Shown: positions 47,001-59,000 of the stretch, in pieces | How the letters are laid out: every line of letters starts with the position of its first letter | Numbering within the stretch: position 1 is the first letter of the stretch | NCBI RefSeq assembly: GCF_006345805.1 | Contig: NC_043022.1 | Location: 17,112,001-17,176,000, forward strand | Reading direction: 5' to 3' | DNA from: Octopus sinensis | Taxonomy: Eukaryota | Length of the DNA stretch: 64,000 nucleotides | Position numbers and translations under genes: made by a program | The notes under the pieces: model-generated | Databases searched by the model: none | What the model saw: only the letters and a program-made list of their open reading frames with translations | Told to the model about the DNA's origin: nothing

Positions 47001-50000
47001 ACATACATACATACCAACATACATACATACATACATACATACATACATATGTATTTGTGTGTCTGTGTTTGTTCCTTACCATCACTTGACAAGTGACGTT
47101 GGTTTGTTTAAATCCCTGTAACCTAGCGGTTCAGCAAAAGCCACCAATAGAATAAGTACTAGGCTTACAAAGAATAAGTCCTGGGGTCAATTTGTTCAAC
47201 TAAAGGCAGTGTTCCAGCATGGCTGCAGTCAAATGACTGAAACAACTAAAAAAATACACACTTACACACACACACACACACACACACACACACACACGTG
47301 CATATATTTATGACCAAAAGAGCATCATCGCAAATACAAGAGTCTGAAATGGCATTCCTCCAAAGAGTCTCTGGAGTAACATTGATGGAGGCGGGGAGGT
47401 GTATAGCTCAGAGATGAGGGTGTCTCTCTAGGTCAAACTGCTGCTTCTCTGTACTGAGAGGTCAGAGGTCAAGAACTTAGAGTATGTGGAATGAGAATGT
47501 CACAGGAAAGAATCACAAGACCGATTCTTCAAGCGAAGCCAACTGACCGGAGAACCAGAGGTGGGCCAAGAAAGATGGTTGGATAAATAAGCATTATATT
47601 TGACAAAAATCTGAATGCTAAAAAATTAACCCTTTCGTTACCGTATTTCTGTTGAGATGCTCTGCGTTTCTTTCAATTAATTTTAAATATAACAAAGAAT
47701 TTACTAAAATAACTTAGTTATCATTAAGCTAGTGTTAGGAATGTAAATTGTGACTAAGGTTTGGTGGAAGATTTTAATTGAAAACTTATGAAAACAGGAC
47801 ATTTGTACTCAGAACCAGAACCGGTTTCAGCCGGGTTGATAACGAAAGGGTTAAGGAAGATTTCGTTGCTATTTCAAGGAATTGTCTCTTGAGAATGTCC
47901 ACTGGAAGAATTCAGGATTAATTCAAAACAATGGGACTAAATAAGCATTATATTCGACAGAATAATCTAAAAGTTAAACAGTTAAGAGAATCAATATGTT
48001 TACGATTGTTTGTTTTGGTTTTTATTATATATTTGGTGTTATATTTTATATTTTGTTGTTGCAGAGAACAACAAAAAATAGAATCTCAAGAAGTGACAAT
48101 CGGTGAACAAATTTTGTTACATTTGGAAACAGCAGAATGCCATCGCAATGGTAAAACTGAAACTGACCAATCAGTGAAGATGACAGATATATGTGCTGCC
48201 ACCTATAGCAGAAATACCAACAAGAAAAGTAATTTAAAAAAGTAAACACCATTCCTCATTATTTCTCATTCTCTTTTCTCTCTCAGATTTGTTTTTACAT
48301 GATTTTTGTCCTTGGGGAGCAACTGATATTCCCTATTTGCGGACCCCTAGAAAGAATGAAAAAGGGCTAATATTTCCTCCAGACTCTGTTTTTGTTACAT
48401 TAATTCAAACCTTAAAGAATCTCTCTAAACACATGACCATGATGCTCCCTCACTATGCCTGTTCATGGTCAGAGATGCACCTATTGTCAGCCACTAAGGG
48501 AAATGCTCAAGTGGTCACAGTCAAGCATATGACAAGCAAATCTGTGGCATTAAGTGGAATATTTGCTATAACAATATTTATGCTTCAGCAACTCAACACT
48601 GAATCTGTCTGAAATGTAATGGAAAATCGGTCAGTTTCAAGACATTGATGTCCAGGTCACAAAAGCAAACTTTGAAGGGAATGGTGGACATTTCCTTTGA
48701 TTCCTAAATAGAAGCAAATAGGAAATATCAATTACTTATCAAAGACAAAAAAAGGCCCCCTTATTGTAACCCCTGGTACCCCTTTATTACCTTTATTACA
48801 ATCTTTAATAGCTCCTTACTATAACATTTAATAACCCCTAATATCCCTTTATTATAGCCTCTGATAACACCTTATTATAATCCCCAGTACCCTCTTATTG
48901 TAACTCCTGGTACCCCTTTATTACAATCTTTAATAGCCCCTTATTATAACATTTAATAACCCCTTATTATAACCCCCAGTAACATCTTATTTTAACCCCA
49001 ATACCTTATTAATATTCCTTTATTACCTCCATTATAACTCCTAATTGACCCTTATTATAACTCCAAATATGTCACCTTTAATTCATTAAACATGCATTGC
49101 ATAAGATAGCCTAAGGGACATGATGCCTAATTAATTAAACCCACATTGGCTAATGTAGCCAAGGTACACAATGCCTAAGCTGAAATTCTGATCCTAAACA
49201 ACAACAACAACAACAACAGCAGCATCAGCATCCCTCTCCATTCTGCTTTGTTCTTATTTTCAGTCTGATTTACCTTCTTGGAGATGACATTGTCTTCATG
49301 TCAGAACTAACAAATGGAACCTGGTGCCAACAACAAGGAAGAAAGTGTCAGGGTTGTTTCAGACATTCAGTGAAGAATTCCAAGACAAACCAATGTCCTG
49401 ATAGACTGGTGACACCAAGACTGGCTTTGCGACTCTCAAAACTTGTCCTCATGTCCAGGCTTACCTGGCCAAACAGTAAGACCAATAAGTATTTATATTT
49501 TTTCTCTTTTTTTTAATGTTTGTTTTAATTGGTGCACCGAAATGACTCCTTGGACAAACGTCTGCTGCCAGACCCTTCATTCACCAATATCTTGGAAATG
49601 GAATTTGGTAAACAGAAATAATGTAAGAGTGCAGTGAATATGAGCTGTCTTGGTTAATGGTTAAAGCATTCAACCAGTATCGAAAGGGTACAGGGTTCAG
49701 TTCCCCCTAGCCACCTAATGGCAACTTTTTTCTGTCTTGTAACGGTAAAAACCCAATCTTCCTCTGCTGTTTTCCACTGTGTTCAAAATTTACTTTCTCG
49801 TCCATAAAAAACCAACACATTTGCTGCTTCCAAAGTTTGTTTATAAAATATATGATGATGATGATGATGATGATGTGTGTGTGTGTGTGTGTGTGTGTGT
49901 AATGAAATGAATAATAACAAACGATGCATAATTGTCAGCTCGTTACAGCTGTTTCTCACATAAACTTTTAATAGAAGAATGAAACGATTACATCATTATA

Positions 50001-56000: not shown

Positions 56001-59000
56001 ACACAGAGTTGAGGGTTTCATGTCTTGTAAGTTCCTTGGTCACCTTACTAATGCTGTGCCACACACAGAGCACCCAATGCACTCCGTAAAATGGGTGGCA
56101 TTAGGAAAGGGACCCAGCCATAGAAACAGACAATTGCAACCTGGTGCAACCCTGGAACTGGCTAGATCTTGTCAAACCATCCAACCCATGCCAGCATGTC
56201 AGAAGGTTCCATCTCCAATAGATCCAACTGGATCTCCAAGCAAGACCAACTCACCTCATGGATGTTATCCAACCACCTTGCTTGTGGTCTGCCCCGGGAT
56301 TTCCCGCCATTTGTTTTCCCATTTATAAAACTTGTCCAGTGATTCTTACTACGTGTCCATAATTTCAAGGCTGTGCTTTCTCAATTCAAAGAAGTAGTGG
56401 CTCTACCTGGACTACCTCTCTGATATCCAAGCTATGCATTCAAATCATTTATCTCAATCTCTATTCCTTAATCCCTAATCTATTGTCATTAATCCATAAC
56501 TACTAATCTCCAGTCTGTAATACATTATCACTAATCACAATTATTTTAGGCAACAGACCAACACATCTTAAGGAGGGAGTTAGTCAATATAATCAACCCC
56601 AGTACACGAGAGGTGGAAACAAATACCACAAGGCATTTCCCCCTCTGCTCTAATAATTCTGCCAACTTAATTCCCAATTATGATAATAACAACCAACAAC
56701 TAACATTTAATCCTTAATCCGTAATCACCAGTTGCTAATCCAGAGTGAGTAATACATGATTGAACTCTAATCCCCAATTTCTAATCCTTAATTATCATTC
56801 TATTTAGTAATCCTTAAACTCTGATCCTTAATCACAAATTATTTAATGCTAAATACTTTGTCACTAATCTATACGCTAATAACTAATGCATAATCTCCAA
56901 CTCTAATCCCTAACCTATAATCCCTAACTTCTAATCTAAATCTCTAACCCCTAGTCAATGATCCTTAATCACCAATATTACCTTTGATCAAAAAATAATA
57001 ATTGTTTTTAATTACTTTCCAGCAAAGAAACCAGCTCAAAAAACAGGTAAGAAAATTGTTTCTTGTTGTTGTAAATGTGTGTGTGTGTGTGTGTGTGTGT
57101 GTGTGTGTGTGTGTGTGTGTGAGTGAGTGAGTGTGTGTGTGTGTGTGTGTGTTGTGTGTGTGTGTGTTGTGTGTGTGTGGTGTGAGTGAGTGAGTGTGTG
57201 TGTGTGTGTGTGTGTGTGTGTGTGTGTGAAAGGATGAAAGGTAAAATTCTGCCGAGGTTGACTTTGCTTTTCATTCTTTCAGGGTCAATAAATTAAGTAC
57301 CAGTTGAGTACTGGGATCAATGTGGTCGACTCATCCCCTTCCCCAAGTTTTGGTGCCCTTGAGGCAAAATTTGAAACCATTATTATTATTATTATCTTCA
57401 TCCTTGAATCCAAAGCTTTGAGTATTGTTCAAATACTTCAATAATTGACACCATTGAACCTGGTTCTGATTCAAGAAGCTTCAGCTCCTCATAAAATATC
57501 TTCAAATTTATACCCTTTTTCTTCTGTATTGATTTTGATCTTCACCTTAGTTATAAATACACTCACCAGTCCATATGTGTGTATGTGTGTGTGTGTCTAT
57601 ATATATATATGTGTGTGTGTGTGTGTGCAGATACATCCTGATAAAGCAATGTTATATCTATCTGCAGCCATTAAAGTCCTAATGAGTCATAAAGAAGCTT
57701 CAGAATACAAGCCCAAGCCTGACCAGTTTCATCCCTTGTACACAGAAGGCAGGTAAGTGATTACAATTTTCCTTTTGGGTATTGTTTATGATGTTGTTAA
57801 CCAGCAACACATTTAAACCCAGAATCTACAAACACTCACACTCAAGCCTCCATCAAACCAAAAACAAAAAAACTTCCAGACACCCAACATTATGTATTGA
57901 GTTCAAAATAGTTAATAACCATCTTTATCAAAATATAATGAATATAGTTCTTTTCATTATTTCATTTTATCTTCATTGTAGAGGATTACGGCTCACAACA
58001 ACAGCAAACCCAGGATTATACCTCCAGCAACTTTCTTTATTGGCCATTTGCGCCAGTTTTGACTACGTCTCCTATAGTAACCATTCATTCATTGAAGTAT
58101 TTGTTAAGAAACAAGCTGGCTGGGTAGCAAACGAGGTGGATTTTCTTGGTCAGAGTTTACTAGTGGTCCAACCACCATTTTCTCAGTCACAGGAATATGA
58201 TTATCCAAGACCTCTCCAGTCAGAATCTGGGGCAAGTATGTTATTTGATGGCTCAAACAAGATGACAAACCTCTCTCCAAATTTCAAGATAAAAGACTTT
58301 CTCTTTTCCAATGTGCGTTATTTCCGACTTGATCCACAGATTTTGACATGTTTGGAAAGAGTCAAGGAAGCTTTCCCAGAGAAATTCCACATCACACCTA
58401 ATGGTGCTTATCGTTCATCAACAGCCAACCTCCTCAACCTATATCACCGCCATATTGAAGAACTTCACCGATTCCAGGCAGGAAAAGCAGTTGAATTGAC
58501 AACAAAAGACAAAGATTCAAACCGTCTTTTACTTCTGGCTGAAACAGTCATCCGACAATGCAGTCCGTCATTAAGGGCAGTTGATTGGTCTCTCGGAATT
58601 GGACTTCACAGCAGCTCCATCTATGTGGATCTGAGGCCACAAAATGGAAAACGTTTCGTAAAAATATGGAACACTGGAGGAAATAATGAAACTTTTAGAC
58701 AACTCAAGAAATTTTCTGATGCTGCACACACAGGTATGGATTGGAATTGAGGTTGGTATGTAAGAATGTTCTCTGTCAGGTTGACAAATGAATGACTGGG
58801 GATGTTTGAGGGGGAGGGAAGAATAAGCTGACAGACAGGTTCACATGTTGGACAAATGAAGGATTAGTGTCTCAAAGGGCAACATACACAGAATACTGTA
58901 CACGCAGCCATGGTGGTCGTCTGCTCTTTATGCAGGATTCTGACCACCTCTTGTATTTACACCTGAGATCTATCATGGCTTCAGATGTGGCTTTTTAAAC

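Follow-up and report, generated by a model that had tools for sequence, protein, structure and literature searches.

In the signalling domain of Hedgehog proteins and in peptidases of family M15, zinc is held by a His/Asp/His triad, formed by H140, D147 and H182 in Shh and by H154, D161 and H197 in M15 (PMC11266112); the mouse ligands are H141, D148 and H183 (PMC6027127). Hedge domains without an intact zinc site are already known, so that the loss of the triad alone is not new in kind. Drosophila Hh has a Hedge domain that has lost the DD-peptidase motif (H-x6-T and H-x-Y, with the equivalent of E177 also lost) and is still functional (PMC6027127), and Hedgling, a pre-bilaterian protein of cnidarians and sponges, places a Hog-less Hedge-type domain, whose DD-peptidase motif is incomplete, in a large extracellular protein (PMC6027127, PMC2362128). 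Here we analyse a 64,000-nucleotide stretch of the Octopus sinensis genome (NC_043022.1, positions 17,112,001 to 17,176,000; hereafter the window), in which the gene LOC115224777 encodes three domains of this kind in a row, namely two tandem Hedge repeats (repeats 1 and 2) and a further domain of predicted LAS (Hedgehog/M15) fold (domain 3), none of which retains the triad. We consider it probable that they are three zinc-less pseudo-peptidase modules of a secreted protein, retained as binding modules together with a C-terminal domain predicted to adopt the CD38 fold. What is new is the context: a deeply conserved family, ranging from a choanoflagellate to amphioxus, that appears to combine three LAS pseudo-peptidase domains with a CD38-like predicted fold.

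This part of the window has no long open reading frames (ORFs) of bacterial type; short in-frame blocks alternate with microsatellite-rich DNA, which points to an animal gene with introns. The gene is fragmented in a bacterial-style ORF listing, and a Pfam scan of the unspliced ORF pieces gave a single marginal HH_signal match. A search of 1.84 billion representative proteins with exon 16 recovered an Octopus bimaculoides protein at 97% identity and about 70 further relatives. The exons in the window are 100% identical (tblastn) to the O. sinensis LOC115224777 protein (P0076, 1427 residues); they were mapped by tblastn of P0076 and P0074 onto the window, and exons 12 and 14 were placed by orthologue mapping. 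All 19 obey the GT-AG rule, and their spliced product of 1273 residues is identical to the P0076 prefix and contains no stop codon. NCBI labels the O. sinensis model 'LOW QUALITY PROTEIN: uncharacterized protein'; since these 1273 residues splice cleanly, the defect behind the flag must lie downstream of the window or in another assembly version. The interval singled out by an earlier note on this DNA, 49264-58733, runs from the first base of exon 10 to the last base of exon 16. The relevant parts of the gene are as follows.

37907..63305, plus strand: LOC115224777 gene, part within the window; 19 exons, residues 1-1273 of 1427, running past the window end
37907..38086, plus strand: exon 1, with the start codon and what is probably a signal peptide ([23 protein letters not shown]...), as read from the sequence
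49264..49475, plus strand: exon 10 (212 nt; enters in phase 2, leaves in phase 1), N-terminal half of Hedge repeat 1
51291..51659, plus strand: exon 11, C-terminal half of Hedge repeat 1
53151..53292, plus strand: exon 12, linker from repeat 1 to repeat 2
55430..55641, plus strand: exon 13 (212 nt; enters in phase 2, leaves in phase 1), N-terminal half of Hedge repeat 2; four Cys conserved
57023..57046, plus strand: exon 14, 24-nt mini-exon (KKPAQKT) within Hedge repeat 2, canonical splice sites on both sides
57668..57752, plus strand: exon 15, middle of Hedge repeat 2, its 3' end being PLYTEG plus the AG of an Arg codon
57982..58174, plus strand: exon 16 up to domain 3, last part of Hedge repeat 2 plus a short linker
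58175..58733, plus strand: exon 16, second part, domain 3 with predicted LAS (Hedgehog/M15) fold
60821-60920, 61952-62142 and 63108-63305, plus strand: exons 17-19, first ~160 residues of a conserved C-terminal 10-Cys domain

The mini-exon 14 is required to reproduce the annotated P0076 protein, and exon 16 truly ends at the donor ACAG/gtatgg at 58733 rather than at the TGA at 58748. Judged by a probable signal peptide, its 18 N-x-S/T sequons, its conserved Cys and the lack of a long hydrophobic run, P0076 is most likely secreted. Its Hedge repeats are internal (residues ~512-905), starting about 490 residues past the signal peptide. Identity to the orthologue is 94% for O. bimaculoides and 58% for Argonauta, and orthologues can still be recognised in gastropods and bivalves; between Octopus and Haliotis, domain 3 and the C-terminal domain are the best conserved regions (40% identity) and the N-terminal region the least (20%).

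The earlier note had read six motifs from the three domains, mapped them onto H140, D147 and H182 of Shh and concluded that the zinc triad is missing throughout. Five of the six occur verbatim on the plus strand.

51368-51403, plus strand: first motif of repeat 1, [12 protein letters not shown]
51542-51562, plus strand: AYLELAV of repeat 1
58085-58105, plus strand: SFIEVFV of repeat 2
58466-58498, plus strand: first motif of domain 3, [11 protein letters not shown]
58616-58636, plus strand: SIYVDLR of domain 3

The sixth, PLYTEGRGLRL of repeat 2, is equally real and is split by an intron, exon 15 ending at 57752 (..GGC AG/gtaagt) and exon 16 starting at 57982 (A GGA TTA CGG). For the Hedge repeats, the mapping onto Shh is borne out by hidden Markov model (HMM) alignments to Shh chains in the PDB. 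Across HMM, family and profile-profile alignments, no domain has the H-x6-D...H pattern: the three positions read F/Q/E, Y/R/E and F/E/Y, the first His being aromatic in all three domains (F, Y, F) and the last His being Glu in both Hedge repeats, as had been claimed. The corresponding codons, with two further residues of domain 3 that are discussed below, lie at the following positions.

51374-76, 51398-400 and 51551-53, plus strand: F, Q and E of repeat 1
57739-41, 57989-91 and 58094-96, plus strand: Y, R and E of repeat 2
58472-74, 58493-95 and 58622-24, plus strand: F, E and Y of domain 3
58628-30, plus strand: conserved Asp of domain 3
58466-68, plus strand: non-conserved upstream His of domain 3

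Repeats 1 and 2 are homologous to the Hedgehog N-domain (Shh/Ihh/Dhh-N, PF01085), with which they have in common the xSLxxEGRAxxI strand, the CAGFDYV helix end and the xIxVxVK strand. Once spliced, they reach 23.1 and 35.1 bits on Pfam HH_signal, both above the cut-off of 22.1 bits, and the entire P0076 scores 53.3 bits; orthologue profiles of repeat 1 and repeat 2 match Sonic hedgehog in the PDB at E=1e-14 and E=5.5e-22, respectively. In the alignment to Shh, His140 is replaced by F and Y in repeats 1 and 2, Asp147 by Q and R, and His182 by E in both. Unlike the Hedgehog N-domain, the repeats have also lost the general base E176 (Q in repeat 1, S in repeat 2) and the double Ca2+ site (E89, E90, D95, E126, D129 and D131 in Shh), whose equivalents are mostly non-acidic: the segment TEGWDEDG of Shh reads LKSWTEAP and LMSHKEAS in the repeats, and the E89-D95 loop is replaced by a four-Cys insert, which in exon 10 is the Cys-rich [12 protein letters not shown]...QCPDR at the position of the Shh Ca2+ loop. 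Repeat 1 has one His in its 181 residues, and two His near the repeat 2 motifs are found in octopods only.

Exons 10 and 13 are alike in length (212 nt) and phase (2 in, 1 out), with an intron at the same position after a conserved W-x-x, and in the tree the two repeat clades (supported at 99/96 and 100/99) are joined as sisters at 90/74, a pattern that points to tandem duplication of an already split repeat. In the earlier note, the repeated aromatic and Glu substitutions were taken as a sign of remodelling. The substitutions are present, but because the repeats are duplicates, with sister clades and matching first exons, the shared residues are best put down to common descent and probably trace back to a single duplication rather than to independent changes.

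The best PDB sequence match of domain 3 is Desert hedgehog (E=0.011). An AlphaFold2 model computed from a 46-sequence alignment has a pLDDT of 96 and a pTM of 0.91, and the top 33 matches of this model in a Foldseek search of the PDB are all Hedgehog N-domains or phage L-Ala-D-Glu peptidase (probability 0.98 for the RB49 L-Ala-D-Glu peptidase and up to 0.97 for Hh-N, with MepA further down). According to the model, domain 3 is a LAS fold with extra elements, the same fold as the Hedgehog N-domain, and it looks as much like Hedgehog as like M15. The LAS fold is marked by a central sheet that carries the H-x(n)-D strand and the H-x-[HD] strand. A phmmer search of the whole library finds distant relatives at E=4e-9 to 7e-4, which score on Pfam Peptidase_M15_3, M15_2 or VanY and carry canonical SxHxxGxAxD...xHxD motifs; eight more distant members of the domain 3 alignment match PF08291 (best 2.4e-16). 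When domain 3 is aligned to the canonical H/D/H Peptidase_M15_3 relatives, F, E and Y take the places of the three ligands, and in a profile-profile comparison with the Hedge repeats (53% probability, E=1.4e-4) the same F/E/Y fall on the Hedge ligand columns. Domain 3 is like peptidase M15 (Peptidase_M15_3/M15A, phage L-Ala-D-Glu peptidases, Zn D-Ala-D-Ala carboxypeptidase) in its significant phmmer links to proteins scoring on PF08291, in the motif frame xYR, RxxxGxAx[DE] and xIx[VI]D, and in predicted fold, but unlike it in having F, E and Y for H, D and H and in being a eukaryotic, secreted, disulfide-containing module of an array.

The earlier note had pointed to the His of HRFQAG in domain 3 as a residue that might rescue the zinc site. 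A pairwise phmmer alignment to Dhh does suggest this His (ELHRF) as a ligand, but it is found in only 3 of 25 family members, in a column at the 7th conservation percentile, and family and profile alignments put Phe at ligand 1; we therefore rejected it. Designed 'Cake' repeat proteins, which topped the profile search of the PDB with the exon 16 alignment, were set aside as an artefact of a repeated 17-residue match.

Ligand columns were ranked by conservation percentile within each orthologous set (25 sequences for domain 3, eight for each repeat). In domain 3, ligand 3 is Tyr in all 25 (98th percentile), the Asp two residues past it is kept in 23 (95th percentile), ligand 1 is F/Y/H in 24 (82nd percentile) and ligand 2 is Glu in 18; the (S/A)xYR motif, which binds substrate in M15, keeps its Arg as R or K in 21 of 25, and the His of GIGLH is fairly conserved. 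In repeat 2, Arg occupies ligand 2 in 5/8 and Glu/Asp occupies ligand 3 in 7/8, a pair that could form a salt bridge in place of the metal, and ligand 1 is variable. In repeat 1, ligand 1 is F/Y/H in 8/8, two orthologues still having His, and ligand 3 is mostly acidic. The suggestion that the pocket had been remodelled rather than left to decay therefore fares differently from domain to domain: the alignments argue for it strongly in domain 3, moderately in repeat 2, where the residues at ligands 2 and 3 are mostly kept, and weakly in repeat 1. The residues at the three positions in the long forms of the protein (repeat 1, repeat 2, domain 3) are these.

Octopus: FQE, YRE, FEY
Argonauta: YQE, YRE, FEY
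Haliotis: HQE, EQD, YHY
Sinanodonta: HYH, YRE, FEY
Batillaria: YTQ, FRE, FLY
Saccostrea: FVE, FME, FEY
Pecten: YKS, RRD, YQY

H/D/H survives in only 8 of the 115 domain instances of the family, none of them from a molluscan long-form protein; seven of the eight are LAS domains that occur singly, and the other is the first domain of the three-domain protein P0036. The short-form, sponge and related proteins of alignment A3 (e.g. P0028, P0030, P0033, P0044) all retain the first zinc His in their middle Hedge domain (14/14), yet ligands 2 and 3 are free to vary; this His is therefore kept for a reason other than a complete zinc triad. P0036 (835 residues, L003 1561-4068) is itself a three-domain array whose first LAS domain has the full H/D/H (with the additional D) and whose other two lack it, and it may represent an intermediate in a series of zinc loss. 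A second M15-like gene lies directly upstream of it (L003 585-1307).

Domain mapping of all matches defines a conserved cassette of LAS, Hedge and LAS domains followed by a 10-Cys C-terminal domain of ~315 residues. The array with this C-terminal domain occurs in molluscs, the annelid Owenia, the echinoderms Asterias and Anneissia, the hemichordate Glandiceps, Branchiostoma, the sponge Oscarella and a choanoflagellate. A short form of about 900-970 residues is found in Asterias, Anneissia, Glandiceps, Branchiostoma (two genes), Owenia, Patella, Tegillarca and Solemya; cephalopods, gastropods and bivalves have a long form (about 1400 residues) with an extra N-terminal region and a second Hedge repeat as its first domain; and larger cassette proteins are found in Oscarella (with Trypsin and PLAT domains) and in a craspedid choanoflagellate. 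Giant metagenomic relatives contain fn3, TNFR-Cys and cadherin-like modules, which ruled out reading them as bacterial toxin-like proteins. Named members are annotated as uncharacterized, as hypothetical or, automatically, as 'Hedgehog N-terminal signalling domain-containing protein', and a literature search on the locus names and on the array family found no paper describing the family. An Oscarella expressed sequence tag with Hedge but without Hog was noted by Burglin (2008) (PMC2362128) and may belong to it. Like Hedgling, the family predates the bilaterians. Whereas Hedgling has one N-terminal Hedge followed by VWA, cadherin, EGF and further adhesion modules, the octopus protein has a three-domain LAS array followed by a predicted CD38-fold domain; HH_signal is the sole Pfam match in the molluscan proteins, that of octopus included, with no cadherin or VWA domain in the octopus protein.

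The C-terminal domain lies only in part within the window.

60821-63305, plus strand: C-terminal domain, partial (P0076 residues 1112-1427 in full)

Its AlphaFold2 model has a pLDDT of 91.8, and the top 50 Foldseek matches in the PDB are all CD38 or Aplysia ADP-ribosyl cyclase (probability 1.00, E from 2e-5, TM 0.38-0.56). Sequence searches of Pfam and the PDB give no match, PF02267 included, and hhalign of the C-terminal alignment (A4) with an alignment of the cyclase family (A6) gives a probability of 1.4%; homology to ADP-ribosyl cyclases at the sequence level is thus unsupported. The A6 cyclases have W79, E100, D101, W142 and E181 as invariant residues, and A4 has no invariant Glu, Asp or Trp. 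The family-invariant Trp, Glu and Asp of the cyclases include the catalytic Glu of YELP. If the predicted fold is right, the C-terminal domain may be another non-canonical or inactive enzyme fold. Most members carry a dibasic or polybasic motif (e.g. KLRRS, RRRRS, VTKRS) ~25 residues from the C-terminus, at P0076 residues ~1395-1402, beyond the window, and short forms have poly-Arg stretches (e.g. KRRRRRRS) after domain 3 and before the C-terminal domain (A4); these basic motifs may be proprotein-convertase processing sites.

The interval encodes the central array of a large glycoprotein, most likely secreted, with two tandem Hedge-type domains followed by a LAS domain of the M15_3 or Hog-cargo type. 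The data establish the structure of the gene, the homology and fold of the domains, the absence of the ligand residues and how conservation is distributed across phyla, whereas the loss of catalysis, the binding role and the kind of ligand are inferred. Purifying selection would maintain these domains as folded modules, stabilised by disulfides, with their former active-site clefts filled anew. In domain 3 the cleft may be lined by the invariant Tyr, the near-invariant Asp, the conserved aromatic residue, the Glu and the Arg of (S/A)xYR, and in repeat 2 the proposed salt bridge between the usual Arg and Glu/Asp would sit at the former metal position. With catalysis apparently lost, the array domains would act as metal-independent binders of a ligand or partner, presenting or targeting the C-terminal CD38-fold domain; candidate ligands are a peptidoglycan-type peptide, a glycosaminoglycan or a protein partner. 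Such a role may be likened to that of recognition proteins that are non-catalytic relatives of cell-wall hydrolases. Non-catalytic peptidoglycan-recognition proteins are secreted animal proteins derived from the fold of a zinc-dependent cell-wall hydrolase, which have lost a metal ligand and serve in binding and recognition. The analogy is a functional one, of a lost metal ligand and a binding module, as their fold is that of amidase_2.

Several observations weigh against this interpretation. In Pfam, domain 3 falls below the HH_signal threshold (12.2 bits) and has no hit at E<=0.01, M15 included, and its Foldseek values are modest (E about 4e-3, TM 0.31-0.47). Whether the zinc site of Shh has a catalytic role at all is still debated (PMC11266112, PMC6027127). 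In repeat 1, ligand 2 varies freely (28th percentile), which fits relaxed constraint as well. Finally, there are candidates for an alternative metal site, either the E/Y/D of domain 3 with the His of GIGLH or the octopod-specific His near the repeat 2 motifs.

This last point leads to the possibility that at least one domain is still an enzyme or a metalloprotein, acting through a rebuilt site (the Glu/Tyr/Asp of domain 3, perhaps with the GIGLH His) or by a metal-independent mechanism. Glu, Tyr and Asp are hard-metal ligands, typical of Fe3+ or Ca2+ sites. The near-invariant Tyr and Asp, together with Glu in 18/25, amount to more conservation than a structural filler needs, some paralogues have His at ligand 1 plus Glu at ligand 2, and the (S/A)xYR Arg is largely retained. 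However, we know of no LAS enzyme that works without an H/D/H zinc site, the upstream His of domain 3 is not conserved, repeat 1 has a single His, and both ligand 2 of repeat 1 and ligand 1 of repeat 2 are freely variable. We consider a rebuilt site improbable on this balance.

A second alternative is that the protein is a Hedgehog-type ligand for Patched-like receptors, with the Hedge repeats as its signalling units. The homology to Hh-N is significant, and Drosophila Hh signals without an intact zinc site (PMC6027127), so that the comparison with the fly protein drawn in the earlier note is apt as far as the loss of the motif is concerned. Unlike the octopus repeats, which have lost all three ligands, fly Hh nevertheless keeps the first His, Hog, lipidation and Patched binding. 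In full-length Hedgehog terms, the octopus Hedge domains are internal and tandem, and neither a Hog autoprocessing domain nor lipidation motifs accompany them: Pfam detects no Hint/Hog in P0076 or its orthologues, and internal repeats lack the Cys-Gly-Pro-type N-terminal start for lipidation, in which a Cys after the signal peptide serves for palmitoylation. Moreover, the Ca2+ site that serves the co-receptors CDO/BOC/Ihog is missing, its place being taken by the Cys-rich insert, and the family is present in a choanoflagellate and a sponge. A role as a Patched ligand is therefore very unlikely. That the gene is a decaying pseudogene or an artefact of its model, with substitutions that are random decay, is hardly credible: the 'LOW QUALITY PROTEIN' flag and the poorly conserved ligand 2 columns speak for it, but 1273 residues are encoded by 19 exons without a stop or a frameshift, orthologues persist from O. 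bimaculoides and Argonauta to gastropods and bivalves, and the former active site contains invariant columns.

Among the triad-intact relatives, those closest to domain 3 (E=4e-9 to 2e-6) include proteins with a C-terminal Hint/Hog domain. One of them (L001:9432-10742, plus strand) combines a signal peptide and an M15_3 domain (E=9e-15) with a low-complexity linker, a GGLCF site and Hint (E=8e-42), the G/CF site preceding Hint; in P0054, P0057 and P0051, which likewise have a signal peptide, a LAS domain is joined to an LDLa module and Hint (E=3e-53, 6e-30 and 1e-11, respectively). The P0054 gene adjoins exons for spectrin repeats and an IRS domain, neighbours that indicate an animal-like genome. 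Further loci of LAS-Hog relatives are as follows.

L001 6001-6642, plus strand: LAS-Hog relative
L002 4001-5587: LAS-Hog relative

The N-terminal domain of these LAS-cargo Hog proteins (P0051, P0054, P0057 and L001:9432-10742) is the closest triad-intact relative of domain 3; unlike the octopus protein, they keep H/D/H, and their LAS cargo is single rather than an array, followed by LDLa (P0051, P0054, P0057) or a linker (L001) and then Hint/Hog. To judge by their sequences, they have the architecture of hedgehog with a domain 3-type cargo that carries H/D/H and would be zinc-competent. How the Hedge domain arose is debated (PMC6027127). It would be tempting to see in the array family and its Hog-fused relatives the eukaryotic lineage that gave rise to Hedge, a secreted M15_3-type peptidase that was already both Hog cargo and array module in early holozoans. 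This idea is speculative and rather unlikely. If true, it would argue against a late bacterial transfer into cnidarians, would make the octopus protein a living record of stepwise zinc loss (H/D/H, H only, none), and would mark the invariant Glu/Tyr/Asp pocket of domain 3 as a ligand site that evolved anew, or as a site for a metal other than zinc.

The window also holds repetitive DNA. A ~175-bp interspersed repeat resembling a short interspersed nuclear element (SINE) occurs at least 13 times, with copies on both strands and at 70-84% identity, several of them in introns of the LOC115224777 gene. Long microsatellite tracts, (TGTATG/CATACA)n, (CA)n and (TA)n, take up much of the intron sequence and create long spurious ORFs on both strands. 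An ORF on the minus strand encodes a Pif1 helicase 2B domain (E=6e-17) and is probably a piece of a Helitron-type or Pif1-like element.

4788-5792, minus strand: ORF with Pif1 helicase 2B domain
8703-8871, 9312-9396, 13033-13204, 13268-13410, 16644-16800, 21398-21569 and 28283-28409: SINE-like repeat copies
35619-35770, 43250-43419, 43619-43750, 45954-46011, 52132-52205 and 54690-54863: SINE-like repeat copies
41211-41879, also e.g. 38900-39200, 46200-47050 and 54480-54720: microsatellite tracts

The array proteins form a natural series from partial to complete loss of the zinc site, which bears on the purpose of the 'pseudo-active site' of Hedgehog, and their Hog-fused, triad-intact relatives provide testable material for the origin of the Hedgehog ligand. 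The array family itself is a candidate for a new class of extracellular binding or recognition protein.

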